A stretch of DNA of 64,000 nt from Octopus sinensis (taxonomy: Eukaryota). Numbering within the stretch: the first letter of the stretch is position 1; the number at the start of each line of letters is the position of its first letter. Location of the stretch: contig NW_021831285.1 in NCBI RefSeq assembly GCF_006345805.1, forward strand, positions 124,001-188,000, written 5' to 3'. The notes beneath the pieces were generated by a model, which searched no databases, was not told where the DNA came from, and was given only the letters and a program-made list of their open reading frames with translations. Shown piece after piece: positions 5,917-31,574 of this stretch. Both the position numbers and the translations under genes were made by a program.

Positions 5917-5934
5917 GACTAGACTAGAATCTAG

Positions 5935-8623: not shown

Positions 8624-8744
8624 CTCTATAGAATTATCAGAATATTCAATATTCTGTAATTGAAATAATCTTAATAATAAAATGGTATGGTGTGTGTCTG
8701 TCTGTCTGTCTGTCTGTCTGTGTGTGCACACCAACTTCAAATTG

Positions 8745-11340
8745 CAATACGATGTCCTCGACTTACATGATGAGGTCCTTAAAACCTTCCCCCCCAAAAA
8801 AATTAAAAAAAATTTTCTGCATTTTGGTTAAAATGAACAACTACAATGTCCTCGATTTACATGATGAAGTCCTTAAAACCTTCCCCCCCAAAAAAATTAA
8901 AAAAAATTTTCTGCATTTTGGTTAAAATGAACAACTACAATGTCCTCGACTTACATGATGAAGTCCTTAAAACCTCCCCCCAAAAAAATTAAAAAAAATT
9001 TTCTGCATTTTGGTTAAAATGAACAACTACAATGTCCTCGACTTACATGATGAAGTCCTTAAAACCTTCCCCCCCAAAAAAATTAAAAAAAAATTTTCTG
9101 CATTTTGGTTAAAATGAACAACTACAATGTCCTCGACTTACATGATGAAGTCCTTAAAACCTTCCCCCCAAAAAAATTAAAAAAAAATTTCTGCATTTTG
9201 GTTAAAATGAACAACTACAATGTCCTCGACTTACATGATGAAGTCCTTAAAACCTTCCCCCCAAAAAAAATTAAAAAAAAATTTCTGCATTTTGGTTAAA
9301 ATGAACCACTACAATGTCCTCGACTTACATGATGAAGTCCTTAAAACCTCCCCCCCCAAAAAAATTAAAAAAAATTTTCTGCATTTTGGTTAAAATGAAC
9401 AACTACAATGTCCTCGACTTACATGATGAAGTCCTTAAAACCTTCCCCCCAAAAAAAATTAAAAAAAAATTTTCTGCATTTTGGTTAAAATGAACAACTA
9501 CAATGTCCTCGATTTACATGATGAAGTCCTTAAAACCTTCCCCCCCAAAAAAATTAAAAAAAAATTTTCTGCATTTTGGTTAAAATGAACAACTACAATG
9601 TCCTCGACTTACATGATGAAGTCCTTAAAACCTTCCCCCAAAAAAATTAAAAAAAATTTTCTGCATTTTGGTTAAAATGAACAACTACAATGTCCTCGAC
9701 TTACATGATGAAGTCCTTAAAACCTCCCCCCCCAAAAAAATTAAAAAAAAATTTCGCATTTTTGGTTTTGGTTAAAATGAACAACTACAATGTCCTCGAC
9801 TTACATGATGAAGTCCTTAAAACCTTCCCCCCAAAAAAATTAAAAAAAAATTTTCTGCATTTTGGTTAAAATGAACAACTACAATGTCCTCGACTTACAT
9901 ATGATGAAGTCCTTAAAACCTCCCCCCAAAAAAAATTAAAAAAAAATTTCTGCATTTTGGTTAAAATGAACAACTACAATGTCCTCGACTTACATGATGA
10001 AGTCCTTAAAACCTTCCCCCCAAAAAAAATTAAAAAAAAAATTTTCTGCATTTTGGTTAAAATGAACAACTACAATGTCCTCGACTTACATGATGAAGTC
10101 CTTAAAACCTTCCCCCCAAAAAAAATTAAAAAAAATTTTCTGCATTTTGGTTAAAATGAACAACTACAATGTCCTCGATTTACATGATGAAGTCCTTAAA
10201 ACCTTCCCCCCCAAAAAAATTAAAAAAAAATTTTCTGCATTTTGGTTAAAATGAACAACTACAATGTCCTCGACTTACATGATGAAGTCCTTAAAACCTC
10301 CCCCAAAAAAAATTAAAAAAAATTTTCTGCATTTTGGTTAAAATGAACAACTACAATGTCCTCGACTTACATGATGAAGTCCTTAAAACCTTCCCCCCAA
10401 AAAAATTAAAAAAAAATTTTCTGCATTTTGGTTAAAATGAACAACTACAATGTCCTCGACTTACATGATGAAGTCCTTAAAACCTTCCCCCCAAAAAAAT
10501 TAAAAAAAATTTTCTGCATTTTGGTTAAAATGAACAACTACAATGTCCTCGACTTACATGATGAAGTCCTTAAAACCTTCCCCCCAAAAAAAATTAAAAA
10601 AAAATTTTCTGCATTTTGGTTAAAATGAACAACTCCAATGTCCTCGACTTACATGATGAAATCCTTAAAACCTTCCCCCAAAAAAAAATTAAAAAAAAAT
10701 TTTCTGCATTTTGGTTAAAATGAACAACTACAATGTCCTCGACTTACATGATGAAGTCCTTAAAACCTTCCCCCCAAAAAAATTTAAAAAAAATTTTCTG
10801 CATTTTGGTTAAAATGAACAACTACAATGTCCTCAACTTACATGATGAAGTCCTTAAAACCTTCCCCCAAAAAAAAAAAAAAAAAATTTTCTGCATTTTG
10901 GTTAAAATGAACAACTACAATGTCCTCAACTTACATGATGAAGTCCTTAAAACCTTCCCCCCAAAAAAAAATTAAAAAAAATTTTCTGCATTTTGGTTAA
11001 AGTGAACAACTACAATGTCCTCAACTTACATGATGAAGTCCTTAAAACCTTCCCCCCCAAAAAAAATTAAAAAAAAAATTCTGCATTTTGGTTAAAGTGA
11101 ACAACTACAATGTCCTCAACTTACATGATGAAGTCCTTAAAACCTTCCCCCCAAAAAAAATTAAAAAAAAATTTTCTGCATTTTGGTTAAAATGAACAAC
11201 TACAATGTCCTCGACTTACATGATGAAGTCCTTAAAACCTTTCCCCCAAAAAATCAAAAAATTATTTTCTGCATTTTGATTAAAATGAACAACGCGAATG
11301 TCCTCGACATTCATGATGAGGTCCATTAAAACCTTCAAGC
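8745..11340. repeat. Tandem satellite, ~94-bp monomer, ~27 copies, inside the Helitron
   Basis: Monomer TGCATTTTGGTTAAAATGAACAACTACAATGTCCTCGACTTACATGATGAAGTCCTTAAAACCTT-C(n)-A(n)-TT-A(n)-TTTTC. Length varies mostly through homopolymer runs. Confidence 0.97.
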
Positions 11341-11475
11341 CAAAAATCTCACGTATTAAGAATATCCTTGATGAAAACGACAGCGAGAATATTAACAATG
11401 ATGAACTCCCAATTATTCGCGATAAAGAAATTCAATTCATCCTATGTTTTTCTCTTTAAAATTAAATGCATATAT

Positions 11476-12765
11476 CAGGGGTCACCAAACTTTTTGCACT
11501 CGCGGGCCGGATTGACCCCAACACAATGAACGCGGGCCGGAGCACGTGCATAGGATTATAATTTTACTAGAAATTCATAAGTGTGTTTTTTACAATAAAA
11601 ACTAATTAAACAAAAATAAAGTAAAAAAAATTTTAATGAGAGCTATGGAACTGTGATCTTTTTTGATAAGTTCATCAATATTTGGTTTTAAATTCTGCAT
11701 CCTATCATGAGAATTGATTTTAAGTGTCCGTCAGTCAATCTTGCACGATGGGCAGACTTAACATATTTCATCCTCGAAAACGTTTGCTCACATTGGTAAG
11801 TTGTGCCAAATATAGAAATCATCTTTATCGCAAAATTCTTTAGTCTCGGAAACTCATCATCCTTGAGATATTCGTAGAACTCAGCGGTTTGGTCCGTCTG
11901 TGACAATCTTTGAGCTGTTCATTTGATTGTAGTCAATAACTTCTAATTGTAATTCATGTTGAACATTTTCAACATTACAAGAAAATGGATTTTCGAACAA
12001 AATTATATCGCTTTCAATTTTGTCAAGTTCAGAAAACTTATGTAAAAAATGATGTTTTATTCTTTGATAATTCCAATTTGGAAAGTAATGTCGATCTCAT
12101 TACAGTTTGCCTCACAAAAACTTTAAAACAAGAAAAGTGTGAAAACTGACGTACTCCAAGTTGTGACTCGAATAACATCAATTTTTGTCGAAATGCTTTA
12201 ATTATCCTGTAGAAATCACAAATTAAGTTTTCCTTTCCTTGTAATTTCAGATTTAGCTCATTCATGTGAGTTTTAACATCAACCAAAAATGATAATTTTG
12301 ATAGCCAAGCAAGATCTGATAATTCGGGATAATAGTTATTTTTACTGGTTAGAAAAATATCAATCTCACTTCTTCGGAGTTTATAAAATCTATTTATACA
12401 TTACCACAGCTAAGCCATCTAACTGCAGTGTAATATGGTAAGTCAAAATATCAGATCCAAAATCGTCAAGTAAAACTTTAAACTGACGGGATAACAGAGA
12501 GATGTTCGTGGCATATTAAACAATAGCTTTCTGCTTTAATTCATCTTTCGCAAAAAATACTTCAATTCCCATAATTTATTGAATACACGGCATTCGCGGT
12601 CAACCTTTCTTTTCATATTAGACATAGCAACAAAGAAAAATTTAACGTTAATGCTGATAAGTTTTTTTTCGAATTAAATCTTGCAAAATAGTTTATTTAA
12701 GTTAATTATTAAGGTATAATTGAATATCTCGAAATAGTGCGCGGGCCGTAGTTTGGTGACGTCTG
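11476..12765 (-). mobile_element. Internally deleted SPIN-like hAT nested in the Helitron
   Basis: TIRs CAGGGGTCACCAAAC / GTTTGGTGACGTCTG. TSD GCATATAT at 11468-11475 and 12766-12773. Motifs IFGTTYQCEQTFS and LNLKLQG. Confidence 0.95.
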
Positions 12766-12844
12766 GCATATATCATTATCGACCATGAATCAAATTAAAG
12801 CTATTATCATATTTGACTTTGACAGAATGTGCAATCACAGATTG

Positions 12845-13047
12845 CACGACTTTGAATAGAGTGTGCAATTAACAGATTTTGAAAAACCACTTTGATAGTT
12901 GAAACCACATTAGCACAATCATTAACACAATTTACCACCAATTGACGCACGACCTGAATAGAGTGTGCAATTAACAGATTTTGAAAAACACTTTGATAGT
13001 TGAAACCACATTAGCACAACCATTAACACAATTTACCACCAATTGAC
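12845..13047. repeat. 102-bp tandem dimer inside the Helitron
   Basis: GAATAGAGTGTGCAATTAACAGATTTTG... occurs at 12854 and 12956. Confidence 0.85.
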
Positions 13048-13426
13048 AGCGCAATCAGAAGAATTTGCGTAAAAATATTAACTATTTACTTGAGTTTTTG
13101 TAAAGATAGAATTTATTTTCGGTATGCCTCTTTTCCTAAACTTTTTTTATTATTCAAAAATATTTTTTAAATAGATAACCGAAGGAGGAAAAACGAAGCT
13201 GAAGAAAAAACGGTCAGCTTAATAAGGTAATTAATTAAATCTTTTTTGTGTGTCGCTTTTTTGTGTGTCGCTTTCTTGCCTGCCGCATTTCCGCCTGCCG
13301 CATCTCCCCTGCCCCATTTCCGCCAGTAAAAAACAAAAAAAGAAAAAAAAGGAAATTACCAAAGGAAAAATGAAAAAATTAAATATAAAAAAAATAAACC
13401 ACAAAAAATGAAAAAAAAAGTGTGCA

Positions 13427-13609
13427 ATGACAATAAACAAGGCCCAGGGACAGTCATTAAAGGTAGTTGGGTTATTTTTAGAGAGTGAGTGCTTTTCACA
13501 TGGACAGCTGAATGTGGGATGCTCGAGGGTAGGCAGAAGAGAAAATTTATTCATATATGCCAAGGAAGGACGGACGACAAACATCGTTTATCAACAGGCG
13601 ATAGAATAG
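13427..13609 (+). pseudogene. Helitron Rep/Hel helicase C-terminal fragment
   Basis: AMTINKAQGQSL...CFSHGQL-VGCSRV...TTNIVY, the Pif1-family helicase motifs V/VI typical of Helitrons. Confidence 0.92.
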
Positions 13610-13789
13610 GGTTACATTAAACCAGGTAGTTTTATACATCTACATAAACTTATAGTTGTTTGATGAAACAGGCCCTCCGCAGGAGCTAGGTCGCGGTGAG
13701 CGAAGCGAGCTGCCGAGCTAGTTTATTTTAAAAATAAGAATCCTCGAATATGTAATTAGCATCATCTTAAAAAAAATTAATTTTAATGT

Positions 13790-15480
13790 AAACTAATAAT
13801 TAGACGACTCTCAAATTTTTGCTTCCCGAGTTCCCCATAACTCCACTTTGATCTTCCCCGCCATGATCCTCAATCTCCTCCTGGGGCATGCAGTCTCTGG
13901 GCCTCTTAAGGGACTTGCTGATCTTCATAGAAAAATTATATTTCCGCCAGTCCCTATTTACGGAATTTGCAGAGTCCAGAATTTTACTGAAGCCATGTTT
14001 GTACTCGACAAACATGCTCTCCAGAGTGGCCTTCAGCGTTACAGTCTGGATGTAAGACCGAACACGTTCTTCAATCCCAAAAAGCTCCATGTACTTGCGG
14101 TAGATTGTTGAAACGATTCCATCCCACGTAGTGACAATTGGCACAATCTTCACCTTAGCCTTGTGAATCAGTTGTAATTCACTAGCTAAAATGTCGTATT
14201 TTTCTACTTCCACACTCTTTAGGTTATCTATTGAAGTCACACCCACTTCAATAAGCCATATTAGGTTCTCTCTTTTGTCGTAGAGGAAAATGTCGGGTTT
14301 GTTATATTGAATTTTCAACTCTGTTGGAATTGTTGTATCAACTCGTATTTCTGCCAAGGTGTTGCACATAATACTCTGGACAGAGTGATTTTTCAGTCTT
14401 CTGGATTTTTTGAATCCAAATCTACCGCACAAGTGCATGTGGATGCATCTCACAATTTCATTGTGTCTTCTCGTATAATCCGAATTAAGCATCCTGTTGC
14501 ATCTAGTTGCCATGTGATCAACCGTCTTATTGGAAGATTTACAGTGTGAACATTTTGAATTAGGGTCTCTAAAAAAAATATTCCTGTCTTGAAGAAATGA
14601 AAACATAGCTTCAGATTTAGGAGATATATTTCCTTTCTTAAGCCATGTTGAAGACGATTGAATATCAAAATTGTTATCATCAAGGGATTCAAATAGCTTC
14701 GAGTGAAGTGTTTCTTCTTGATATTGGACAGTAAGGAATCAATCTGCAATCTACTCAGTGATTTGGTTATCTCTCCTTGGGTGTTCGTTCCATATTTACA
14801 ATGCAGGAATTCTGTGATCGTGGCCATATGGGACTTTCTTTTCTGCTCGGCCCACAGAATTGCTGCCTTTCTTGGGGAGATTAACTTTCGCCTCTCCAGA
14901 TTTTCACGAAAGTCAAACAGCATTTTTTCCGACCTGAAGGTAATCGAGGCAAGCCCTCTTCCAAGTTTATCCCTCGGCAAATATAGCACTCCTTACAGGC
15001 TGGTTTCATATGAATATTTAGATCAATTAACAGCTTCCTGACAAATTTGTCAATTTCATCAAAAGCGGACGGTTCCAAATCCAGAAGGCCGATATAATAA
15101 TTGTACAAAGATAAAGCATGTTCATTAATTGCCTTAAACAAATTCACCGAATTTAGTTTCGTCTTCGACAATCTTTCGATACGTTGTTGAACCCCAATCC
15201 GTAAATTTTTCAAAGTCGATATCAGCTGGGGAGGTCCAGTGAGTGAATTTCCAGAGGAATAAGGACGACCATGAACATTTAAATCTACTCTTCCATTACA
15301 ATTTTCACTATTATTTTGAGTAGATGCGTCCATAGATATGGTTATTCCATTTTGTAACCCAACCATCCGTACACCACAAGAAATTTTTTTTCTTGTTGTA
15401 ATTAGCATAATCATAGCCAACTAAATTATCTACAATGACTTTGTTCGGATCATACTACCTTTTTCTGTAGTCAGCAGCTA
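13790..15480 (-). mobile_element. R4/Dong-like non-LTR retrotransposon, 3' part (restriction-like endonuclease)
   Basis: LYLPRDKLGRGL, CCHC knuckle (CSHC...HMATRC), YTRRHNEIV, KPDI...IEV, KYDIL, TWDG. Frameshifted. Confidence 0.88.
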
Positions 15481-15744
15481 AACAATTGAATATACACATG
15501 TGTTTTCTAATTCATGTGTTAAACTGATAATTTTTTTGGAAAAGTGAATTTATATTATTAAAAAACGTTCACAATCAATTTACACTTTTTTATTGTAGTG
15601 GGACCGAATAAACGCTACGAAACTCGACATCCCATCCGGAGAATCTACTTCCATGTGGAGTCCGTATGTGATGAGATGTCCCTTTTTAGAATTTTTTTTG
15701 TTTTTTTTTTTAAAAAAAATTAAGTATATAAAGACCAAATAAAG

Positions 15745-16584
15745 GGTACATATGTAGTAGTTGGCGGCCACTTTTTAGCGAATTTTAAAAAAACTATATT
15801 TTTTTTAGTTAAAAAAATATATAATTAAAAATAATACAATATAAAAATAATAAAATCCCACGCTACTTTAATTTAAATGAGAAGTGAGGTCAATCTATTC
15901 AATCTACCCACAAATATGTCAGAAGCTATCAATTTCATGCAATCCAGAGGAATCATCCCAAAAAAAAGTGTGTCGCAACGGACACCAAATGACTTTAAAC
16001 ATTGGCAGCTCTCCGGCTTGGAATTGCTAGGTGTGCGTAAATTTATAATATAATAGGCGGTGAAGGAATGATTGTGGAAATTGACGAAAGTCATTTTTCA
16101 AAAAGGAAATACAACAGAGGCAGAATGTTGCCTGAGCAATGGGTTTTCGGCGGAATCTGCAGAGAAACGAACCAATGCTTCTTAGAAGCAATACCTGACA
16201 GAACAATGAAGACCCTTACGAAGGCTATTCTTGAGAATGTAGAAGAAGGCACCATTCTCATATCAGACTGCTGGAAGGGTTATTCAACAAAAGATCTTCA
16301 GGATGCAGGATATCAGCACCTGCAAGTGAATCACAGATATTGTTTTGTTGATCCAACTACGGGTGCACACACCCAACATAAGAATTTGAAACAATCATGG
16401 AGTGCATTGCCTTACATTGTCCCCCAGAATCAAAACTAAAATAAAAAAAATAATTAATAATTTTGTATAAAAATAATTAATTTTTTTATAGTAATATTAT
16501 TTAAAAAAGGTAATTATTCACCAAAAAAAATATAGTTTTTTTAAAATTCGCTAAAAAGTGGCCGCCAACTACTACATATGTACC
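15745..16584 (+). mobile_element. Merlin (IS1595-like) DNA transposon, internally deleted, intronless
   Basis: ~60-bp perfect TIR starting GGTACATATGTAGTAGTTGGCGGCC. TSD AAATAAAG at 15737-15744 and 16585-16592. Empty site near 25755-25762. Motifs GGEGMIVEIDES, WVFGG, SDCWKGY, VNH, FVDP. Confidence 0.95.
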
Positions 16585-16599
16585 AAATAAAGTTTTAAT

Positions 16600-17450
16600 T
16601 AATTAGTATGACCCTAGGATAGCGTGTGAATTTCCGCGGACAATTGCACACGAAATCCTCTGGAAGAGCCACGACGTCTCCCGCGGATCACCTGTTTTTT
16701 TGGTGATTAGACCACCCAATCTTCGAATGAACGAAAAACTCTCTGTTCCAAAGACTCTGGAAGTCTCCACAGCGATCGGCTGGAAAAGATATCTGTCTGC
16801 CAGGAAAGAGTATTTCTTTTTCTTCAACTCTTCAGAACGTTTTGCAGCAGAGCCAGGAAAGGATGCCGAACTTCCGAATGAAGAAGGTCCAAACGTGTCA
16901 GGGCAGGTAAAATCCCAAACAAGTGCTTTCCCTCTCGTGTACGGGTAGATGGTTACGCCGTCTGGGCGTTTGCCATCCCCTCTATCGAGACCAGCTGGTT
17001 CGAGTTGAGAGTGGAATCCGGCAGCGTCCATGGCCCTTTTGATGATGTCATTGGCGGCGGAATGTCGGGGAAAACGACCGGCACTACGAGTGCAAGAAAG
17101 TGGGTGCCTTCCCAATGGACCAATCCTCTTTCCACATTTGCAGGGGTGTGGGGTGCACATCGGTAAGCCGAGACGTAGACATAGGCCGATCCTAATGGTA
17201 TCGTCGTCCAGTTTACAGCCGGTAGACGCAATAGGACAAGCGCTTATCCAGGAGCCAGAATTGGGTTGTGCACCCGATCTGAGACATATGATCCGTTCTT
17301 GGTCCATGCACAGTTCGATAACTCTGTAAGTCTCCCTGCACCAGATTTCGTCCCAATGTCTCTGTGAAGATTCCACTTCGGGGAGTCTCAGACCAAGGCT
17401 TTTTAGAATTAGCATATCAATACAGTCGAGTAAGATGATGTCCGGCTTGC
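16600..17450 (-). mobile_element. CRE-like non-LTR retrotransposon, 3' fragment (RLE domain)
   Basis: SGSWISACP, LCLRLGLP, CKCG...H...C, RH, KRPDG, WDFTC, ELKKKKY, PIAVET, QRISCAIVRGN. Confidence 0.85.
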
Positions 17451-17474
17451 TATTCTCGATATACTCCTATGGTA

Positions 17475-17755
17475 CAGCGATACAAATAAAAAACGGAACA
17501 CTCATTTTCTCGATTTTTTTCTATTGAATGCATGATTTATTTTAACAAAAATAGAATTTTTAGAAGACAAACATAACTTTAGCCTTAAAAAAATAAAAAC
17601 AACTTATATTTCGGACCGTAATTAAATCCAGTTTTGTCTAAACAAAATAAAAAAGAGAACAAAATAAAATTCTCTATTTTTACAGAGTTATAAAAAAAGC
17701 ATTATATAGAAAGAAATTGAGAAATTGGCTGTTCCGTTTTTTATTTGTATCGCTG
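17475..17755. mobile_element. Tc1/mariner-type MITE
   Basis: Perfect 26-bp TIR CAGCGATACAAATAAAAAACGGAACA flanked by TA on both sides. Duplicate at 26644-26924. Confidence 0.92.
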
Positions 17756-17788
17756 TATATTATTTTTTGTTTGAGAGTCATTTTCCAA

Positions 17789-18010
17789 TTATGCAATTCC
17801 ATCTGCTTCAACAATCGCAACTTTTTCTCATTTTTCAATCTCAAAGGAAATTCCTGTTAAAACAGACGGTCACCGTAGATCTTATAGAGGTCTTTGACAT
17901 ATTCTAATAAACAAACCACAAAACAGTTTTAGTAAAGTAATCGCGCTGGTGTTACCCTCTTTTGGATGCGTTTTTTAATCGCTTCCAGTTGCCTCTCTAC
18001 CTCGATAGTT
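17789..18010 (-). pseudogene. Decayed ABC ATPase (ABC-F-like) fragment
   Basis: With two 1-nt frameshifts it reads RQLEAIKKRIQR...LLE/VKDLYKIYGDR/VLTGISFEIEK*EKVAIVEADGIA, resembling an NBD N-terminus up to a degenerate Walker A. Cut off next to the MITE. Duplicate at ~26958-27180. Confidence 0.5.
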
Positions 18011-18483
18011 CTTTTAGGACCTCAATGTCATTTTCCGATGTCAGCCCTTTTCCAATCAAGGTTTTGATGTAAAACGGATGGAAGCCTATTTCTTGATCTT
18101 CCTCTAAAAGATGAGGAGTGTAAAAGTATTTCATCGGAGGACATTATTAAAAAATTAATATTCAAAAAATCATTAATCGTTTGAGAATGTAAATATATGT
18201 GAGATAAATAAAAAATTCTATTATATTTTTGCAGAAAAACAGAACAGCCAGAAACTTTTATCACTTTTCCTATTCACAAAAACTGCTGTCGAAATGTAAA
18301 CGAACCCATCCATGCCACAAGCGACCCTAGACTTAGCAATATAAAGACTCTATATCGACTCAAAGGCTCGGGACACTTTTTTCTTGTAAAAAATGAAATT
18401 AATATTTCGGATCAATTAATTATTGTGTTGAATATTAATCTTATTTATAATTCAAAAATAAAATACATTTGGCTCCTGTTTAG

Positions 18484-20791
18484 ATGGTTCGTTCGTCATC
18501 AATTTGCAAAGTAAATGAAATTATAATGAATATGGAAAATTTACTAAGCTGCAACCTCTGGTAGTTACAGGCTTTAAATTTTTAGTTCTAATTACTTGTT
18601 GAAGGCAGTCATTATTCACTGTGGACATTCATTTTGCCAGTATTGAGTTATATATAGTTCATATAGCGAGTGTGTTGACATGCCAGCTGACCACCTTGAC
18701 TATTACTGTCCTGTCTGTTCCCACAAATACACGCACAAGTAATCAGTGGTCATGTTTCAGTTCTGCCTGGAATGACGTAATCATTTCTGATTTGGCAGCA
18801 AAATTGCAGAAAATTAAAAAAACTGTGAAAGAAGAAATCAAAGGAAAATGTTTTGTCTTTTTATATTGTTAGCATTCAAGGCTGAATTATCATCACTTCC
18901 AGTTATAAAAAGAAATAAAGTGATCAAATGCACTAAAAATAATTCAAAAAAACTACACGAGGTGGAAAACTCTCACAATCAATCACTCAATGACACTTTG
19001 ACCAATCAGAAAGACAGTCAAATTAGCTATTTGGGCACAATTCCTATGGGCAGTAAAAATTGTTACAAAAATTATAAAAACCCAATCGTCGTCAGGAATG
19101 CAACTTTAGACGATTGGATTGATTCCACTAATCACAACTCGACTGTCCAAGCCGATGAAAACTCTCACATTTTCCACTCATTGACCAACGAAGAATCCCG
19201 TTTTGAAAATTTGAGTTTTCCAAACAACAAACAGACTGATTTCTCCTCTGTTATACATGTTGACTCTGTCTCTTCTCGTTTTGAAAATTTGAGTTTTCCA
19301 AGCCACAAACAGAAGGTTGTCTCCCCTGTTATATATAATGACTCCGTCTCTTCTCGTTTTGAAAAATTGAGTTCTCCAAACAACAAACAGACTGATGTCT
19401 CCACTGTTATACATGATGACTCCGTCTCTTCTCGTTTTGAGAATTTGAGTTCTCCAAGCAACAAACAGAATGATGTCTCCACTGTTATACATGATGACTC
19501 CTCTCTTCTCGTTTTGAGAATTTGAGTTCTCCAAGCAACAAACAGAATGATGTCTCCACTGTTATACATGATGACTCCTTCTCTTCTCGTTTTGAGAATT
19601 TGAGTTCTCCAAGCAACAAACAGAATGATGTCTCCACTGTTATACATGATGACTCCTTCTCTTCTCGTTTTGAGAATTTGAGTTCTCCAAGCAACAAACA
19701 GAATGATGTCTCCACTGTTATACATGATGACTCCGTCTCTTCTGGACAGAAGATCTTGGAATTAGTTGATGAGTCCTTCAATAAGGAACTTACTCTTGTC
19801 ACTACCGACAACTTTGATTCTCAAATGGGCAATGGAATGGGAATAGAGGACATGTCTCAAGACCTGTTTGAATCCGACTCCCAAAATGGGGGACTGTGAG
19901 AATATATAGTTCTAATTATAGAGAAATAAACCACGATGTATTAGAAACGGTTTTCGTCACTTCCACCTCTCCTCGGACGTCTGATCACAAGTACGCTGAC
20001 TCTCAGACCACTCCGAGTTCAGTGGGGAAGGAGAACTATTCCTTGGTCTCCTCTGGTCTCGGTTCTGAGATTGTTGTAAGCTTTATATGTCCAGATTATT
20101 TAAAATAGCAACAAATTCTCCATTTTTCAGACTTTTTTGGAGTGAGTTATAGCACTAGTTTTAATGCGAATGTGACATCCCATGTGGTCGTTGAAGGTCG
20201 GCATTGTGACCTTATTTTGTCCAGGTTCCTCTGGACTGTGCAGTCGTACTCTCAAATACTTGAATGGAGTGGCACAGGGTTGCTGGGTTGTCGACTCAGC
20301 CTGGGTTATTGACAGTCTTGTACACAAAAAATGGATTTCTGAGGTTGAACTGGTCTGTTTGGAATTCGAAGGAGATTTATGAAGTTATCGGAGACACTGA
20401 TTTCGGGAAGCTGCATTATGGGCCAAAGAAGAGTCGGGTTGATAGCAAAAGGTTGTTTGAGGGGATGGAAATATGCTGTGTTGGGAGTTTTTCCATGATT
20501 TTGTTGGGTTTGTTTGTTGCGGGGATTTGTAGAGGACTTGAATTGTCTCGTCATGCTTGCTGGTGCAAGTTTGGGGGATTTTTCGAACATGTCCAATTCG
20601 TTTCGAAAGTCGGTGGTTGTTGTTGAGGTCATCGACGAGTTCATTTTGCCGAATTTGATTCGTACGTGGTTTTGTGTATTTTAGGCTATCGTGACGAAGG
20701 CAGGGTTCATTTGGTTGTTCTGGAATGGCTATTGGATTCCATTTCACTCCATCAACTCAGGCCGTTTTCTGAATATTCACTCGATTTGTAG
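18484..20791 (+). CDS. BRCA1: BRCA1-like protein (RING + tandem BRCT), ~682 aa after correcting one 1-nt deletion near 19500
   Basis: Ten GT-AG introns: 18561-18585, 18640-18666, 18739-18760, 18850-18872, 19896-19921, 20076-20108, 20197-20224, 20344-20371, 20508-20532, 20662-20684. RING CNLC...CGHSFCHEC...CPVC. BRCT motifs VSSGL, SRTLKYLNGVAQGCWVV, GPKKSR, LFEGMEICCVGSF, EWLLDSI. Confidence 0.92.
19205..19743 (+). repeat. 78-bp (26-aa) coding tandem repeat in BRCA1, 7 units
   Basis: Units start at 19205, 19283, 19361, 19439, 19516, 19594 and 19672; consensus ENLSSPSNKQNDVSTVIHDDSVSSRF. The second BRCA1 copy has 4 units. Confidence 0.95.
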
Positions 20792-21472
20792 TATTTATTT
20801 TAAAATGATTTATTTGGTAAGAGCTCGTCGAGGAGACATTTATTAGGTTAGGATGTCTACCGTCGTTAATTTGATAAAGATTTGTAAAGATATTTGTGTT
20901 TCCCGCGCTGGTCACAAGCAGGATGGTGACTTGTGTATACTTAACAGGTCGATTTACACATTTTGACATTAAATTAAAAACGAAAATAATTTGATATAAA
21001 AAGGGTTTAGCGTCATTTTAATTAAAAAATGATATTTTTAAAAGATGTTATATAATCTTAGTTTTTCTTAAAAATGCCACTGAATACCAAAATCTTGTAA
21101 ATCTACTGCTCCGACAATTAGAATTGACTACATTTAAATTCCAAAAATACAAACTTATAAAAAACCAAATCAAATCGTGAAAATTGATGATTAGTATATT
21201 TGCTATTTACAATTCATAGTCTTTATCTGTTGGAACAGAATAACAAAGACACACTTTTTTGGACTGAAGTCGTTTATTTAATGAAAAGATAAGAAAATAA
21301 GTAGAATATTGCAGACTTGAGGGTGAAAGAAAGGATTTGGCCTATTTTATGCAGAAATGAATTGCTGAATAAACTCTGCGTCCTGAGGAAAATGGTTAAT
21401 GCAGCAGCACGTTCGGGATGAAGAGTGTGAGTAATGAGGTGGACCCACCTTTTGATTTGAAAGAGGAGGCAG

Positions 21473-22110
21473 TGTAGAAAGTGAGTTTTTATAAAAAGTT
21501 GTAAATAAAACGAAATAAAATTTTTCGTTTCGTTTAAATTATTTTTATCATTTTCATTTTATGTATCACTATTCACAATTTTCATGTTTATTGGTTCTTC
21601 AGATCTTTTTTTATTTTAAAACAATTGATATGAAGACATTTTCAAATTCTGATAAACATTATGAACGGTAGTGGTACTAATACAATTTTTCTTGTAATCG
21701 TTTTGAATATTTTTAATTCTGCACATGTTTACACGCGTACTCATTTTGTGGCGTTTTTTATAGTGTGTGTTTAATAAGAGCGAATTGCAAATACTCCTTG
21801 ATACTGTTCCCTATGTGGCCAAAGCTTCAACTATTTATTTTAAAATTTTAGCAAGTATCGAGACATTAATATTTTTGATTACATTTTTTCCATATCTTGA
21901 AACATTTCAATCATTATTATGTCTTATAATCATTTCATCTCCTACGTTTATATTTTCCTCATCATATCGCCATTTTCTTTATTTTCTCTCCGATTTTTGA
22001 AGATTTTCCAGAATCTTCATATTTTTCTGTTCATTTTCCGAGCATTCATTTTTTTCGTAATTATTTCTTTTGGGTCAGTTCCATCGAATGCCATTAATGC
22101 GTTTATTTTA
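21473..22110 (-). mobile_element. Decayed Ginger-like (integrase) element, 3' fragment
   Basis: KWRYDEENINVGDEMIIRH resembles the integrase C-terminus at 47617. Terminus begins TGT at 21473. Duplicate at 30406-31040. Confidence 0.45.
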
Positions 22111-25100
22111 TCAATGTTAGGAAAATGGGTAAAATTTTCTTTTCTGATTTGAGATATCCATAATTCCAACTTCATTATGAAAGCATTTATTGAACTGATC
22201 ATATCGATAATATATCTATTCTTTCCCTGTAATTCTAAACTGAGTTCATTCAGTTTGCTGGTAATATCGGTTAAAAATGCCAAGTTTATTAGCCAATCAG
22301 GATTTTCAAGAAAATGCCAATTCTTGTTGTTTTCTTTAGAAAATTCTTTAATGTATGATAATAATTCTATGAAACGACTGAGAATTAATCCCTTGCTTAA
22401 CCATCTTATGTCACAATGTAAAGGTAGATCGCCATAGATTGCATCGACTTGTTCTAGAAAAAGTCGAAATAATCTTCTTTGTAGGGGCTTGGCTCGGATG
22501 GAATTAATAATTTTAACTGTTGTCTCCATAACATAGTTGAAATTTAACATTTTCCCACATAATGCATGTTGGTGAATGATGCAATGATATGATAAAAATT
22601 TCGGAAAATGTTCATCTTTCCGACAAAATGCAATAAATCCATTTTGATTCCCAATCATTGCAAGGGCTCCATCTGTTGTTATGGATACAAGTTTCTTCAT
22701 TAACGGTAATAATTCGAATGATAACAAAAACGTTTTGAAAGAATTATAAATATTTTCACCAGTTGTTCTTTCTTTCATAGGTATAATAGCAAATAACTCT
22801 TCCTTGACAGTTAGATCATGGAAGATTAAACGGGAAAATACACATAGATGGGCGATATCAATAGCATCGTTTGATTCGTCAAACTGTAGAGAAAAACACG
22901 AACATGCGTAAAGATCCTTTTTTAACTGCGAAAGAAGATTTTCAGAAATGCTTTCAGCCCTTCTGACAATTGACTGTTTTGAGAGCTGAAGCTCTTTGAT
23001 GCAATTTGAAATTTCCTGTTTATTTTTCATACCATCAAATAGTGAATCGGCAGCTTCTAAAAAACAAGATTTTAAAATTTCCCCATCAGTGAAAGGTTTT
23101 TTGTGTTTTACGACTAGACTAGAATCTAGACTCTAGATTTACATAGATTGTATAATCTTTCATTTGAGATTTTCCTTGCCCAGAAGATTCCGATCAATAT
23201 ACGGATTTGATTCCTATGAAATGGATCTAACTTCACTAAATCATTTTTGAGGTTCTCCATGTTCCAAAATTATAGAGCAGGACTTTTATGTGGATACAAA
23301 AGTTGAATGTTCAACGTCAAGGAACAACGGATTGTGACATTTTTGACGAAATGAGAAAATATGCCTTGATGGTATCCTTCAAGCGTAGTGTGGATACTCC
23401 GCTTAGCGACTTTGAGGCAAACTCGACTGAGACAATCGTTTTTTTGCCAGAACAGAGAATAAAGACTTTCTATAATGATGATAATTAGATGTTTTTGGAG
23501 ACGGTGAACAATGCAAAGAAGCCATGTTAAGTTTCATATCAAGACCTCTTTCCTTAACCACATAACATCCATTTAGAATTTCCACATCCAGCTGAAGTGG
23601 CGAGAGTTCTCAGCTGAGTCGTTCTAATGCACTTCATGAAGCGACTTTTAGAAGTTTACTATCCCAGAATTGATAAAATATATTGTTACCTCTATAGAAT
23701 TATCAGAATATTCAATATTCTGTAATTGAAATAATTTATTTTAAAAATAAGAATCCTCGAATATGTAATTAGCATCATCTTAAAAAAATTAATTTTAATG
23801 TAAACTAATAATTAGACGACTCTCAAATTTTTGCTTCCCGAGTTCCCCATAACTCCACTTTGATCTTCCCCGCCATGATCCTCAATCTCCTCCTGGGGCA
23901 TGCAGTCTCTGGGCCTCTTAAGGGACTTGCTGATCTTCATAGAAAAATTATATTTCCGCCAGTCCCTATTTACGGAATTTGCAGAGTCCAGAATTTTACT
24001 GAAGCCATGTTTGTACTCGACAAACATGCTCTCCAGAGTGGCCTTCAGCGTTACAGTCTGGATGTAAGACCGAACACGTTTTTCAATCCCAAGGAGCTCC
24101 ATGTACTTGCGGTAGATTGTTGAAACGATTCCATCCCACGTAGTGACAATTGGCACAATCTTCACCTTAGCCTTGTGAATCAGTTGTAATTCACTAGCTA
24201 AAATGTCGTATTTGTGCAGTTTTTCTACTTCCACTCTTTAGGTTATCTATTGAAGTCACACCCACTTCAATAAGCCATATTAGGTTCTCTCTTTTGTCGT
24301 AGAGGAAAATGTCGGGTTTGTTATATTGAATTTTCAACTCTGTTGGAATTGTTGTATCAACTCGTATTTCTGCCAAGGTGTTGCACATAATACTCTGGAC
24401 AGAGTGATTTTTCAGTCTTCTGGATTTTTGAATCCAAATCTACCGCACAAGTGCATGTGGATGCATCTCACAATTTCATTGTGTCTTCTCGTATAATCCG
24501 AATTAAGCATCCTGTTGCATCTAGTTGCCATGTGATCAACCGTCTTATTGGAAGATTTACAGTGTGAACATTTTGAATTAGGGTCTCTGAAAAAAATATT
24601 CCTGTCTTGAAGAAATGAAAACATAGCTTCAGATTTAGGAGATATATTTCCTTTCTTAAGCCATGTTGAAGACGATTGAATATCAAAATTGTTATCATCA
24701 AGGGATTCAAATAGCTTCGAGTGAAGTGTTTTCTTCTTGATATTGGACAGTAAGGAATCAATCTGCAATCTACTCAGTGATTTGGTTATCTCTCCTTGGG
24801 TGTTCGTTCCATATTTACAATGCAGGAATTCTGTGATCGTGGCCATATGGGACTTTCTTTTCTGCTCGGCCCACAGAATTGCTGCCTTTCTTGGGGAGAT
24901 TAACTTTCGCCTCTCCAGATTTTCACGAAAGTCAAACAGCATTTTTTCCGACCTGAAGGTAATCGAGGCAAGCCCTCTTCCAAGTTTATCCCTCGGCAAA
25001 TATAGCACTCCTTACAGGCTGGTTTCATATGAATATTTAGATCCATTAACAGCTTCCTGACAAATTTGTCAATTTCATCAAAAGCGGACGGTTCCAAATC

Positions 25101-28100
25101 CAGAAGGCCGATATAATAATTGTACAAAGATAAAGCATGTTCATTAATTGCCTTAAACAAATTCACCGAATTTAGTTTCGTCTTCGACAATCTTTCGATA
25201 CGTTGTTGAACCTCAATCCGTAAATTTTTCAAAGTCGATATCAGCTGGGGAGGTCCAGTGAGTGAATTTCCAGAGGAATAAGGACGACCATGAACATTTA
25301 AATCTACTCTTCCATTACAATTTTCACTATTATTTTGAGTAGATGCGTCCATAGATATGGTTATTCCATTTTGTAAACCAACCATCCGTACACCACAAGA
25401 AATTTTTTTTCTTGTTGTAATTAGCATAATCATAGCCAACTAAATTATCTACAATGACTTTGTTCGGATCATACTACCTTTTTCTGTAGTCAGCAGCTAA
25501 ACAATTGAATATACACATGTGTTTTCTAATTCATGTGTTAAACTGATAATTTTTTTGGAAAAGTGAATTTATATTATTAAAAAACGTTCACAATCAATTT
25601 ACACTTTTTTATTGTAGTGGGACCGAATAAACGCTACGAAACTCGACATCCCATCCGGAGAATCTACTTCCATGTGGAGTCCGTATGTGATGAGATGTCC
25701 CTTTTTAGAATTTTTTTGTTTTTTTTTTAAAAAAAATTAAGTATATAAAGACCAAATAAAGTTTTAATTAATTAGTATGACCCTAGGATAGCGTGTGAAT
25801 TTCCGCGGACAATTGCACACGAAATCCTCTGAAAGAGCCACGACGTCTCCCGCGGATCACCTGTTTTTTTGTGGTGATTAGACCACCCAATCTTCGAATG
25901 AACGAAAAACTCTCTGTTCCAAAGACTCCGGAAGTCTCCACAGCGATCGGCTGGAAAAGATATCTGTCTGCCAGGAAAGAGTATTTCTTTTTCTTCAACT
26001 CTTCAGAACGTTTTGCAGCAGAGCCAGGAAAGGATGCCGAACTTCCGAATGAAGAAGGTCCAAACGTGTCAGGGCAGGTAAAATCCAAACAAGTGCTTTC
26101 CCTCTCGTGTACGGGTAGATGGTTACGCCGTCTGGGCGTTTGCCATCCCCTCTATCGAGACCAGCTGGTTCGAGTTGAGAGTGGAATCCGGCAGCGTCCA
26201 TGGCCCTTTTGATGATGTCATTGGCGGCGGAATGTCGGGGAAAACGACCGGCACTACGAGTGCAAGAAAGTGCGTGCCTTCCCAATGGACCAATCCTCTT
26301 TCCACATTTGCAGGGGTGTGGGGTGCACATCGGTAAGCCGAGACGTAGACATAGGCCGATCCTAATGGTATCGTCGTCCAGTTTACAGCCGGTAGACGCA
26401 ATAGGACAAGCGCTTATCCAGGAGCCAGAATTGGGTTGTGCACCCGATCTGAGACATATGATCGTTCTTGGTCCATGCACAGTTCGATAACTCTGTAAGT
26501 CTCCCTGCACCAGATTTCGTCCCAATGTCTCTGTGAAGATTCCACTTCGGGGAGTCTCAGACCAAGGCTTTTTAGAATTAGCATATCAATACAGTCGAGT
26601 AAGATGATGTCCGGCTTGCTATTCTCGATATACTCCTATGGTACAGCGATACAAATAAAAAACGGAACACTCATTTTCTCGATTTTTTTCTATTGAATGC
26701 ATGATTTATTTTAACAAAAATAGAATTTTTAGAAGACAAACATAACTTTAGCCTTAAAAAAATAAAAACAACTTATATTTCGGACCGTAATTAAATCCAG
26801 TTTTGTCCAAACAAAATAAAAAAGAGAACAAAATAAAATTCTCTATTTTTACAGAGTTATAAAAAAAGCATTATATAGAAAGAAATTGAGAAATTGGCTG
26901 TTCCGTTTTTTATTTGTATCGCTGTATATTATTTTTTGTTTGAGAGTCATTTTCCAATTATGCAATTCCATCTGCTTCAACAATCGCAACTTTTTCTCAT
27001 TTTTCAATCTCAAAGGAAATTCCTGTTAAAACAGACGGTCACCGTAGATCTTATAGAGGTCTTTGACATTCTAATAAACAAACCACAAAACAGTTTTAGT
27101 AAAGTAATCGCGCTGGTGTTACCCTCTTTTGGATGCGTTTTTTAATCGCTTCCAGTTGCCTCTCTACCTCGATAGTTCTTTTAGGACCTCAATGTCATTT
27201 TCCGATGTCAGCCCTTTTCCAATCAAGGTTTTGATGTAAAACGGATGGAAGCCTATTCCTTGATCTTCCTCTAAAAGATGAGGAGTGTAAAAGTATTTCA
27301 TCGGAGGACATTATTAAAAAATTAATATTCAAAAAATCATTAATCGTTTGAGAATGTAAATATATGTGAGATAAATAAAAAATTCTATTATATTTTTGCA
27401 GAAAAACAGAACAGCCAGAAACTTTTATCACTTTTCCTATTCACAAAAACTGCTGTCGAAATGTAAACGAACCCATCCATGCCACAAGCGACCCTAGACT
27501 TAGCAATATAAAGACTCTATATCGACTCAAAGGCTCGGGACACTTTTTTCTTGTAAAAAATGAAATTAATATTTCGGATCAATTAATTATTGTGTTGAAT
27601 ATTAATCTTATTTATAATTCAAAAATAAAATACATTTGGCTCCTGTTTAGATGGTTCGTTCGTCATCAATTTGCAAAGTAAATGAAATTATAATGAATAT
27701 GGAAAATTTACTAAGCTGCAACCTCTGGTAGTTACAGGCTTTAAATTTTTAGTTCTAATTACTTGTTGAAGGCAGTCATTATTCACTGTGGACATTCATT
27801 TTGCCAGTATTGAGTTATATATAGTTCATATAGCGAGTGTGTTGACATGCCAGCTGACCACCTTGACTATTACTGTCCTGTCTGTTCCCACAAATACACG
27901 CACAAGTAATCAGTGGTCATGTTTCAGTTCTGCTGGAATGACGTAATCATTCTGATTTGGCAGCAAAATTGCAGAAAATTAAAAAAACTGTGAAAGAAGA
28001 AATCAAAGGAAAATGTTTTGTCTTTTTATATTGTTAGCATTCAAGGCTGAATTATCATCACTTCCAGTTATAAAAAGAAATAAAGTGATCAAATGCACTA

Positions 28101-31040
28101 AAAATAATTCAAAAAAACTACACGAGGTGGAAAACTCTCACAATCAATCACTCAATGACACTTTGACCAATCAGAAAGACAGTCAAATTAGCTATTTGGG
28201 CACAATTCCTATGGGCAGTAAAAATTGTTACAAAAATTATAAAAACCCAATCGTCGTCAGGAATGCAACTTTAGACGATTGGATTGATTCCACTAATCAC
28301 AACTCGACTGTCCAAGCCGATGAAAACTCTCACATTTTCCACTCATTGACCAACGAAGAATCCCGTTTTGAAAATTTGAGTTTTCCAAACAACAAACAGA
28401 CTGATTTCTCCTCTGTTATACATGTTGACTCTGTCTCTTCTCGTTTTGAAAATTGAGTTTTCCAAGCCACAAACAGAAGGTGTCTCCCCTGTTATATATA
28501 ATGACTCCGTCTCTTCTCGTTTTGAAAATTGAGTTCTCCAAACAACAAACAGACTGATGTCTCCACTGTTATACATGATGACTCCGTCTCTTCTCGTTTT
28601 GAGAATTTGAGTTCTCCAAGCAACAAACAGAATGATGTCTCCACTGTTATACATGATGACTCCGTCTCTTCTGGACAGAAGATCTCGGAATTATTTGATG
28701 AGTCCTTCAATAAGGAACTTACTCTTGTCACTATCGACAACTTTGATTCTCAAATGGGCAATGGAATGGGAATAGAGGACATGTCTCAAGACCTGTTTGA
28801 ATCCGACTCCCAAAATGGGGGACTGTGAGAATATATAGTTCTAATTATAGAGAAATAAACCACGATGTATTAGAAACGGTTTTCGTCACTTCCACCTCTC
28901 CTCGGACGTCTGATCACAAGTACGCTGACTCTCAGACCACTCCGAGTTCAGTGGGGAAGGAGAACTATTCCTTGGTCTCCTCTGGTCTCGGTTCTGAGAT
29001 TGTTGTAAGCTTTATATGTCCAGATTATTTAAAATAGCAACAAATTCTCCATTTTTCAGACTTTTTTGGAGTGAGTTATAGCACTAGTTTTAATGCGAAT
29101 GTGACATCCCATGTGGTCGTTGAAGGTCGGCATTGTGACCTTATTTTGTCCAGGTTCCTCTGGACTGTGCAGTCGTACTCTCAAATACTTGAATGGAGTG
29201 GCACAGGGTTGCTGGGTTGTCGACTCAGCCTGGGTTATTGACAGTCTTGTACACAAAAAATGGATTTCTGAGGTTGAACTGGTCTGTTTGGAATTCGAAG
29301 GAGATTTATGAAGTTATCGGAGACACTGATTTCGGGAAGCTGCATTATGGCCAAAGAAGAGTCGGGTTGATAGCAAAAGGTTGTTTGAGGGGATGGAAAT
29401 ATGCTGTGTTGGAGTTTTTCCATGATTTTGTTGGGTTTGTTTGTTGCGGGGATTTGTAGAGGACTTGAATTGTCTCGTCATGCTTGCTGGTGCAAGTTTG
29501 GGGATTTTTCGAACATGTCCAATTCGTTTCGAAAGTCGGTGGTTGTTGTTGAGGTCATCGACGAGTTCATTTTGCCGAATTTGATTCGTACGTGGTTTTG
29601 TGTATTTTAGGCTATCGTGACGAAGGCAGGGTTCATTTGGTTGTTCTGGAATGGCTATTGGATTCCATTTCATTCCATCAACTCAGGCCGTTTTCTGAAT
29701 ATTCACTCGATTTGTAGTATTTTATTTAAAATACGATTTATTTGGTAAGAGCTCGTCGAGGAGACATTTATTAGGTTAGGATGTCTACCGTCGTTAATTT
29801 GATAAAGATTTGTAAAGATATTTTGTGTTTCCCGCGCTGGTCACAAGCAGGATGGTGACTTGTGTATACTTAACAGGTCGATTTACACATTTTGACATTA
29901 AATTAAAAACGAAAATAATTTGATATAAAAAGGGTTTAGCGTCATTTTAATTAAAAAAATGATATTTTTAAAAGATGTTATATAATCTTAGTTTTACTTA
30001 AAAATGCCATTGAATACCAAAATCTTGTAAATCTACTGCTCCGACAATTAGAATTGACTACATTTAAATTCCAAAAATACAAACTTATAAAAAACCAAAT
30101 CAAATCGTGAAAATTGATGATTAGTATATTTGCTATTTACAATTCATAGTCTTTATCTGTTGGAACAGAATAACCAAAGACACACTTTTTTTTGGACTGA
30201 ATTCGTTTATTTAATGAAAAGATAAGAAAATAAGTAGAATATTGCAGACTTGAGGGTGAAAGAAAGGATTTGGCCTATTTTATGCAGAAATGAATTGCTG
30301 AATAAACTCTGCGTCCTGAGGAAAATGGTTAATGCAGTAGCACGTTCGGGATGAAGAGTGTGAGTAATGAGGTGGACCCACCTTTTGATTTGAAAGAGGA
30401 GGCAGTGTAGAAAGTGAGTTTTTATAAAAAGTTGTAAATAAAACGAAATAAAATTTTTCGTTTCGTTTAAATTATTTTTATCATTTTCATTTTATGTATC
30501 ACTATTCACAATTTTCATGTTTATTGGTTCTTCAGATCTTTTTTTATTTTAAAACAATTGATATGAAGACATTTTCAAATTCTGATAAACATTATGAACG
30601 GTAGTGGTACTAATACAATTTTTCTTGTAATCGTTTTGAATATTTTTAATTCTGCACATGTTACACGCGTACTCATTTTGTGGCGTTTTTTATAGTGTGT
30701 GTTAATAAGGCGAATTGCAAATACTCCTTGATACTGTTCCTATGTGGCCAAAGCTTCAACTATTTATTTTAAAATTTTAGCAAGTATCGAGACATTAACA
30801 TTTTTGATTACATTTTTTCCATATCTTGAAACATTTCAATCATTATTATGTCTTATAATCATTTCATCTCCTACGTTTATATTTTCCTCATCATATCGCC
30901 ATTTTCTTTATTTTCTCTCCGATTTTTGAAGATTTTCCAGAATCTTCATATTTTTCTGTTCATTTTCCGAGCATTCATTTTTTTCGTAATTTATTTCTTT
31001 TGGGTCAGTTCCATCGAATGCCATTAATGCGTTTATTTTA
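22111..31040 (+). repeat. Second unit of a direct tandem segmental duplication (first unit 4916-22110)
   Basis: Collinear copies of the hAT ORF, RTE fragment, R4-like, CRE-like, MITE, ABC fragment, BRCA1 and Ginger fragment. First unit 17195 bp minus three TE insertions and three 78-bp repeats gives ~8931 bp, versus 8930 bp for this unit. Confidence 0.95.
27651..29717 (+). pseudogene. BRCA1: BRCA1-like second copy with several 1-nt deletions (pseudogene or consensus errors)
   Basis: Same exon-intron layout as copy 1 and four repeat units. At least six single-base homopolymer shortenings break the frame. Confidence 0.8.
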
Positions 31041-31574
31041 TTTTCATCTTGTTTTTTTAATGTGACGGTCACATATAATATACTAGTTTATTAAAAAAGA
31101 AACTAATTAACTAAGTAATTTTTCTAACCAAGTCCAGAGCCTTTCGAAGTGACACATATAAACCAATTTATTTACGAAACCAAAATTTAATTAAGGTTAA
31201 AATATTTAATTAGGACTTTCAATCCTGATTGGTAGTCTCTCTTCTCCTTTTAGGAGAAGAGTCTGCTGCTTGTTCCTCTTCATTCTCTATCTCTGCGTCA
31301 GTTGTTGTGCGTCTTTTATCTTTGAATGGAGTGTCCTGGCGGCATGCCATTTCTACTAGTTGATCGGTCGCAGAGGCATATTCCTCGCCAGTTATCTCAT
31401 TCCATGCTTTGTGTCAATTATCATGCTTCTAGCGTCCTTTTGAGCACAATCGATTGGATGTATGTCATTGTAAATTTTCAATATATAGTTTATCCATATA
31501 ATTTTTGAGCATCTTGTGAACAACACCATCCCAGGTCAGAACACGGGATAATTTTAAACTTGCATTTTTTTTTT

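Follow-up and report, generated by a model that had tools for sequence, protein, structure and literature searches.

A 64,000-nucleotide stretch of the Octopus sinensis contig NW_021831285.1 (the window, meaning the whole stretch of DNA that was analysed) carries at positions 18484-20791 a locus that resembles a much shortened BRCA1 gene with a tandem repeat in its middle, and it carries a second copy of the same locus downstream. This raises the questions of whether the locus is a real BRCA1 gene, why neither copy can be read through as assembled, and which animal it belongs to. We consider it probable, taking the explanation as a whole, that the locus is the BRCA1 orthologue of a dicyemid mesozoan, that its linker holds a minisatellite of variable length, and that its reading frames were broken by errors in the assembled sequence. 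The assembly searched was that of Octopus sinensis (2,719,151,902 bases in 13,516 sequences).

Gene model, domains and predicted function

No single frame is open throughout 18484-20791, as ten short GT-AG segments break the reading frame. We treated these segments as introns and obtained a model with 11 exons. The start codon lies at 18484, with an in-frame TAG upstream, and the stop codon TAG occupies 20789-20791, so the span 18484-20791 given by an earlier sequence-only reading was exact. All ten introns of copy 1 are GT-AG, with lengths, in order, of 25, 27, 22, 23, 26, 33, 28, 28, 25 and 23 nt, and five of the ten begin with GTA. In the spliced product of about 682 residues, a C3HC4 RING is followed by a Ser-rich linker containing a 26-amino-acid repeat and by four SQ motifs, and the C-terminal part is a tandem BRCT. 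The frame of about 680 residues that the same reading had described is recovered after excision of the ten micro-introns and bridging of an absent base at 19501/19502; it is not open in the sequence as assembled. The features of copy 1 are as follows.

18484..20791, + strand: copy 1 of the BRCA1-like gene, 11 exons, from three-frame reading and a splice model
18484-18560, 18586-18639, 18667-18738, 18761-18849, 18873-19895, 19922-20075, + strand: exons 1-6 of copy 1
20109-20196, 20225-20343, 20372-20507, 20533-20661, 20685-20791, + strand: exons 7-11 of copy 1
18550..18715, + strand: region coding for the C3HC4 RING, C23 to C60, in exons 1-3, with predicted flanking helices within residues 8-86
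19819..20006, + strand: SQ cluster, residues 414-467, at the end of exon 5 and in exon 6, with four SQ in 53 residues
20019..20776, + strand: region coding for the tandem BRCT, residues 472-678, in exons 6-11, found with phmmer against PDB and with Pfam

The gene model of copy 1, its domains, the anatomy of its repeat and its frame break can be read from the letters themselves, and the splicing is predicted. The splice model of copy 1 is best supported by an external comparison, because the C-terminal 207 residues of the spliced product (472-678) align end to end with the human BRCA1 BRCT crystal structure, and this alignment runs unbroken over five exon junctions.

The RING alone is not diagnostic of BRCA1, and orthology therefore rests on the BRCT domains and on the architecture. 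We compared the BRCT pair with all PDB chains using phmmer. The results showed a best match to BRCA1 with an E value of 1.7e-27, followed by BARD1 with 1.9e-10 and MCPH1 with about 3e-6; the bit scores were 99.7 against BRCA1 and 43 against BARD1, and the gap in E value between the two is about 17 orders of magnitude. Pfam BRCT scored 25.4 bits (cut-off 21.3). Three stretches specific to BRCA1, CSRTLKY, GPKKSR and EICCVGSF, are retained in the pair. The phosphopeptide-binding residues named in the sequence-only reading (in VSSGL and RTLKY) do align with human BRCA1, VSSGL with VVSGL and CSRTLKY with CERTLKY. In the pocket, S483/G484 correspond to human S1655/G1656 and R527/T528/K530 to R1699/T1700/K1702, and the equivalent of M1775 is kept. 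Human F1704 and R1835 are both Leu in the window protein. A Pfam scan of the spliced protein found no Ank family at E <= 0.01.

At the N-terminus, all eight C3HC4 ligands are in place, with the spacing C23-x2-C26-x11-C38-x-H40-x2-C43-x2-C46-x10-C57-x2-C60, and the RING is thus retained as had been claimed. Pfam zf-C3HC4 scored 22.2 bits (cut-off 21), and C3HC4 RING models lie at residues 23-61. All four motifs of the proposed SQ cluster were located as well: DSQM, MSQD, DSQN and DSQT stand at residues 414, 426, 434 and 466. This density was matched by 77 of 5000 composition-preserving shuffles and is higher than in 98.5% of them. The RING-linker-tandem BRCT layout, a BRCT pair far nearer to BRCA1 than to BARD1 and the lack of detected ankyrin repeats bear out the description of the locus as a miniature BRCA1. 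Judged by its sequence, the locus is a real, small gene of the BRCA1 type, with a predicted role in DNA repair.

The window protein presumably works as BRCA1 does elsewhere. By homology, the N-terminal RING would be an E3 module that recruits an E2, and the BRCT pair would read phosphoserine-x-x-Phe (pSer-x-x-Phe) marks on repair partners, tethering the ubiquitin ligase at DNA breaks. The SQ cluster is a plausible target of the checkpoint kinases ATM/ATR. The Ser/Asn-rich linker appears to be fast-evolving, and the 78-bp in-frame minisatellite in exon 5 is probably a lineage-specific insert. To our knowledge, no part of BRCA1 is under less constraint, in any lineage, than the linker between RING and BRCT.

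The source of the gene within the octopus assembly

The sequence-only reading had not noticed that the locus is most likely no gene of the nominal organism. A second set of genes with micro-introns, found on small contigs, points to a parasite. Our evidence argues strongly that the gene comes from a dicyemid mesozoan (Dicyema sp.) living in the kidney of the sequenced Octopus sinensis, whose DNA was co-assembled into small unplaced contigs.

A search with domain 2 of the largest RNA-polymerase subunit (Rpb1) revealed two gene sets in the assembly. In one, the octopus's own, distances between exons are 0.7-3.7 kb and the scaffolds measure 68-118 Mb; in the other, gaps of 14-29 nt separate the pieces, which lie on contigs of 0.4-0.65 Mb that share a young transposon, a long interspersed nuclear element (LINE), with the window. 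The human BRCA1 BRCT query likewise retrieved both the window gene and separate exons 1.2 kb apart on scaffold C10, which are the octopus's own BRCA1-like gene. Genes resembling RFC1 and TopBP1 and containing micro-introns are present on other small contigs. Searches with the BRCT family and with an approximate BARD1 BRCT query found a host gene on C4, and on the parasite contigs the RFC1- and TopBP1-like genes alone. Among the matches listed, the repeats of the window match small contigs only. The window itself has 35.4% GC, consists mostly of transposons and shows a CpG observed/expected ratio of 0.88.

Dicyemids are a lineage famous for the shrinkage of genes and introns. Animal introns of less than 30 bp have been described solely in myxobolids and Dicyema japonicum, their 5' site being reduced to GTa (PMC13644364). 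The ten window introns measure 22-33 nt, and genes on sister contigs show a like pattern; this intron length and the small gene size fit the published gene reduction of dicyemids. D. japonicum was isolated from O. sinensis, and its genome has 36.7% GC, 49% repeats and 1.24% heterozygosity (PMC6736024). The protein collections searched held no protein nearly identical to that of the window gene. A ciliate origin was rejected, the stop codon being TAG with no in-frame TAA or TAG, and a myxozoan origin was rejected for the wrong host; other octopus parasites were considered, and a dicyemid fits best.

Duplicated metazoan BUSCOs amount to 5.2% in the O. sinensis assembly and to 0.4-1.9% in other chromosome-scale octopus assemblies, and 86% of the bases of the O. 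sinensis assembly lie in chromosome scaffolds (PMC10700109). Both figures are consistent with a co-assembled second animal. Our literature search found no prior report of parasite sequence in this assembly. The practical point is larger than the gene: the unplaced contigs of a chromosome-level, RefSeq-annotated octopus assembly appear to contain, to a substantial extent, the genome of a second animal. Whoever looks there for novelties of cephalopods, be they compact genes, odd introns or young transposons, risks describing the parasite, and the small contigs would be a long-read resource for dicyemid genomics.

The second micro-intron gene set was seen on roughly at least 100 contigs of 0.2-1.3 Mb, for which tens of Mb is a rough guess. 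Examples, in our numbering, are C7756 (the contig of the window), C9300, C9002, C8318, C12461/C12597, C8703, C1794 and C8597. C9300 carries a gene for a Pol I-type subunit. An identical polymerase-subunit fragment stands at C12461:405691-406187 and at C12597:12874-13370, which suggests haplotigs or redundant contigs in the parasite fraction. RefSeq proteins named 'Octopus sinensis' that derive from small contigs include P0088 and P0114, the latter a 'T-complex protein 1 subunit beta-like' fused to reverse transcriptase.

The repeat array, the two copies and the frame breaks

The linker repeat of copy 1 and the single frame break within it are located as follows.

19199..19743, + strand: 78-bp (26-amino-acid) coding minisatellite of 7 units inside exon 5, from Tandem Repeats Finder (TRF), score 929, and unit alignment
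19501..19502, + strand: missing base in copy 1, unit U4 reading CCTCTC where U5 and U6 read CCTTCTC, with a frameshift leading to TGA at 19523-19525

The unit of 78 nt equals 26 codons, and one plus-strand frame is open in the array. TRF and unit alignment agree with the earlier count of seven units in copy 1 and four in copy 2, where the array spans 28364-28672 (4.0 units of 78 bp by TRF). Units U1-U3 of copy 1 have diverged at 6-11 of their 78 positions, and U4-U7 are nearly identical, with 0-1 differences. Compared with these, the units of copy 2 read V1 = U1, V2 close to U2, V3 close to U3 and V4 = U7. The three extra units of copy 1, U4-U6, depart from U7 in a single column, where the base is G or T or is missing. 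The array consists of an old, diverged core, U1-U3, and one young unit, which is present once in copy 2 and has been amplified to four in copy 1. The derived T found in the extra units implies at least two amplification steps. Expansion and contraction of this kind would be explained by slippage or by unequal exchange between near-identical units. Six of the eight differences between U1 and U7 change the amino acid, and since differences among the old units are mostly of this kind, the constraint on the repeat sequence appears weak.

An assembly collapse is a very unlikely source of the seven-versus-four difference, because a long read far exceeds the array of copy 1 in length (545 nt, that is 7 x 78 minus 1). 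As far as the assembly shows, the repeat has indeed changed length faster than its flanks have diverged, as had been proposed: the 900 bp upstream contain no substitution, the duplicated unit differs by about 0.56%, and the arrays are three units apart. The claim that the repeat had largely replaced the central region held in part; a Ser-rich array of 26-amino-acid units is present there, but it accounts for 182 of about 375 linker residues and not for the whole.

The 78-bp unit did not occur elsewhere in the 2.7-Gb assembly, and two very large protein collections, one of 1.84 billion representative proteins, held no credible relative of the exon-5 repeat. An exhaustive HMMER search matched the exon-5 piece to a Lys/Asp-rich repeat protein (E 2.4e-4), which we judged to be a composition artefact. 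We also modelled the exon-5 piece 18875-19501 with AlphaFold from the single sequence. The mean predicted local distance difference test score (pLDDT) was 47.6, and the first 97 residues were unstructured.

The unit junctions read S-S-R-F, six times in copy 1 and three times in copy 2, and an S-P site is found in six of the seven units of copy 1. S-S-R-F fits the pSer-x-x-Phe consensus of BRCA1-type BRCTs, and as a four-residue pattern it is a candidate only; its conservation is uninformative because the units are too young. If phosphorylated, these S-S-R-F/S-P sites could be built-in pSer-x-x-Phe ligands of the protein's own BRCT pair, forming a self-docking array of tunable valency, an idea that we hold to be improbable. 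Were it true, the array might serve auto-inhibition or phospho-dependent self-assembly at breaks, as a substitute for adaptors lost from a reduced genome. The sequence-only reading had suggested a tunable spacer or a phospho-docking array as candidate roles; as the likeliest reading, we take the array for a tolerated spacer whose length varies.

The two copies of the gene lie in two units arranged head to tail.

27651..29717, + strand: copy 2 of the gene, its ten introns letter for letter as in copy 1, with 4 repeat units and a few substitutions
4916..22111, + strand: duplication unit 1, from self-BLAST and reading of the junctions
4916-6505, 6506-13718 and 13719-22111: parts of unit 1, respectively a hAT piece, 7.2 kb that unit 2 lacks and the shared block with copy 1
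22112..31041, + strand: duplication unit 2, with a hAT piece at 22112-23700, then 31 bp, then the shared block with copy 2 at 23732-31041
15745..16581, unstranded: 837-bp DNA transposon with terminal inverted repeats of about 50 bp and an IS1595/ISXO2-type transposase fragment

The 837-bp transposon belongs to unit 1 and is missing from unit 2, and the direct repeat ACCAAATAAAG flanks it; its ISXO2/IS1595 type is the kind that we take to be called Merlin in eukaryotes. Over the 7.3 kb that the units share, we counted 41 substitutions, an overall divergence of about 0.56%, and 18 one-base indels. Every one of the 18 falls in a homopolymer, and in 14 cases it is copy 2 that lacks the base. At 18:41, indels are far commoner relative to substitutions than in ordinary mutation. 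The shared blocks also differ by seven longer indels.

The single lesion of copy 1 is the missing base at 19501..19502. In copy 2, eight single-base deletions relative to copy 1 affect exons 4, 5, 9 and 10 (near 27932, 27949, 28452, 28480, 28524, 29348, 29410 and 29499, in the coordinates of copy 2), and the translation meets stops throughout. To the sequence-only reading, both copies were intact genes in a single ordinary genome; in the assembly each is frame-broken, and the pair may be two alleles. All nine break sites, one in copy 1 and eight in copy 2, lie in homopolymer runs, and no lesion is common to both copies. The same type of noise is seen in the LINE copies, which are otherwise 99-100% identical and vary mainly in length (1185-1190 nt); one AA-to-A difference of this type truncates an open reading frame in the window. 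Most likely, the frame breaks are mostly or all errors of an unpolished long-read consensus, and in the animal, copy 1 at least is probably intact. A micro-intron rescuing the frameshift of copy 1 was also considered. A 35-nt GT..AG segment was found, but the same letters occur in every unit, and the candidate was rejected.

Two further fragments of the 5' part of the gene were found on other contigs.

C8459:218395-219447: 5' gene fragment L024, truncated and stop-ridden, including 480 bp of upstream sequence
C7512:59715-60134: 5' gene fragment L023, truncated and stop-ridden

Both have 75-86% nucleotide identity to the window gene, and each breaks off at the first repeat unit or ahead of it. 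The assembly contains no other copy of the BRCT half and no separate haplotig of the gene, and no comparable duplicated pair exists elsewhere in the 188,496-nt contig.

Alternative explanations, known relatives and other features of the window

Several observations weigh against a dicyemid BRCA1 orthologue with a variable linker spacer and error-broken frames. The RING is nearer to TRIM RINGs than to that of BRCA1, since residues 8-86 matched residues 9-89 of the PDB BRCA1 chain 1jm7_A with an E value of 5e-4 and TRIM21 scored higher (1.5e-7). A PALB2-type coiled coil is not evident, residues 389-471 containing nothing heptad-like when read by eye. BARD1 is the obligate partner of BRCA1, and no BARD1 was found on the parasite contigs with the BRCT family and an approximate BARD1 BRCT query, a search of low sensitivity across micro-exons. 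Eight of the 14 copy 2 deletions fall inside the 2.1-kb gene, where about four would be expected, a mild excess over random error. AlphaFold draws the 26-amino-acid units as beta-hairpins with a pLDDT of 50-80 and not as disorder, which calls a mere spacer into question; perfect repeats are prone to such models, and this one is unreliable and may be an artefact.

The RING that is not by itself diagnostically BRCA1-like, together with the failure to find a close homologue (the full 682-residue query retrieved no orthologue from the protein collections and one weak Sphagnum RING/BRCT protein), would also suit some other RING-plus-BRCT protein, either BARD1 or a lineage-specific fusion. We regard this as highly improbable in view of the 99.7 bits of the BRCT pair against BRCA1 versus 43 against BARD1, the BRCA1-specific stretches it keeps (CSRTLKY, GPKKSR, EICCVGSF) and the lack of detected ankyrin repeats. 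An octopus gene, whether a retained compact paralogue or a transfer from parasite to host, has the least chance of all. The assembly is labelled Octopus sinensis, and RefSeq annotates neighbouring small contigs as octopus; however, octopus genes, including the BRCA1-like BRCT on C10, have kb-scale introns on chromosome scaffolds, the repeats of this contig were seen on small contigs only among the matches listed, and the CpG ratio of 0.88 also speaks against the host. If the frameshifts were real, one or both copies would be decaying pseudogenes, and the parasite would be losing BRCA1 or keeping a working copy outside the assembly. In its favour, neither copy is open in the assembly, C8459 and C7512 carry two older 5' fragments that are truncated and stop-ridden, the region is rich in transposons and undergoing rearrangement, and the partial concentration of copy 2 deletions in the gene keeps the idea alive for copy 2. 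Decay nevertheless seems unlikely to us, because every lesion is a single-base homopolymer change and none is common to both copies, copy 1 is one base short of intact, stop-creating substitutions are absent, the residues critical for BRCT function are retained, identical LINE copies show like length noise, and no other BRCT half is present in the assembly.

The number of genes is more evenly balanced, as a true recent tandem duplication and two haplotypes placed end to end fit the data equally well, with about even chances. We give a likelihood just short of even to the possibility that the two copies are haplotypes, or variants from different parasite individuals, laid head to tail, which would make the seven-versus-four difference an allelic variable number tandem repeat (VNTR) in a single-copy gene. 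The divergence of about 0.56% does not reach the published heterozygosity of D. japonicum (1.24%), the differences (two insertions, the VNTR and single-nucleotide polymorphisms) are allele-like, a separate haplotig of the gene is missing from the assembly, and the parasite DNA within a host sample is that of a population. Set against this are the gap-free long-read contig, its clean unit junction at 22111/22112 and the lack of any further pair resembling a false duplication in the 188-kb contig. Two haplotypes would be compatible with the dicyemid explanation in every respect except copy number.

Compared with known proteins, the window protein resembles human BRCA1 (1863 amino acids) in its N-terminal C3HC4 RING with the same first-loop spacing, its SQ cluster before the BRCTs and its end-to-end tandem BRCT. 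It differs in being about a third as long, without the large exon-11 region and without an evident PALB2 coiled coil; its linker contains a 26-amino-acid minisatellite without a detectable relative, and F1704 and R1835 are replaced by Leu. BARD1 shares the RING and the tandem BRCT, but it has ankyrin repeats between them, which the window protein lacks, and its BRCT similarity is weaker by about 17 orders of magnitude.

BRC-1 of C. elegans is about 600 amino acids long, and we know of no tandem coding repeat in its linker. Like the window protein, it is a compact RING-linker-BRCT2 protein and comes from an invertebrate whose repair toolkit is reduced. Its demonstrated partner is BRD-1 (BARD1); no partner of the window gene was found on parasite contigs. 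BRC-1 is treated as a BRCA1 orthologue (PMC6211622, PMC9097270). Compact BRCA1 orthologues are thus already known, and the window gene is another. The gain for BRCA1 biology is modest: one more compact orthologue in which the RING and the BRCTs again look indispensable and the linker looks free to evolve, here by minisatellite expansion. The array shares with other coding VNTRs in disordered linkers a unit that is a multiple of three, clustered and near-identical newest units, and a number that varies between near-identical copies, although here the repeat number was compared between two assembled copies. The literature searched contained no description of a coding minisatellite in the linker of a BRCA1 orthologue.

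The window also contains young transposons, satellites and an open frame.

31589-34583 and 49318-50595: LINE of the endonuclease/reverse-transcriptase kind, very young
8748-11336: satellite with a 95-bp unit in about 27 copies, within the 7.2-kb stretch of duplication unit 1
61399-64000: satellite with a 161-bp unit in at least 16 copies
59607-60185, + strand: 192-codon open frame with Sel1 repeats (Pfam E 1.2e-8), resembling the cytochrome-c-oxidase assembly factor COA7

The LINE is present in at least 40 copies, 99-100% identical, across small contigs, and most of the differences among them are changes of one base in length. The named relatives closest to it, from Phytophthora, Elysia, Sycon and 'Octopus', have 41-57% identity. 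The contig ends inside the 161-bp array (C7756:188496). The COA7-like frame at 59607-60185 is the only other non-transposon gene candidate that we noticed in the window.

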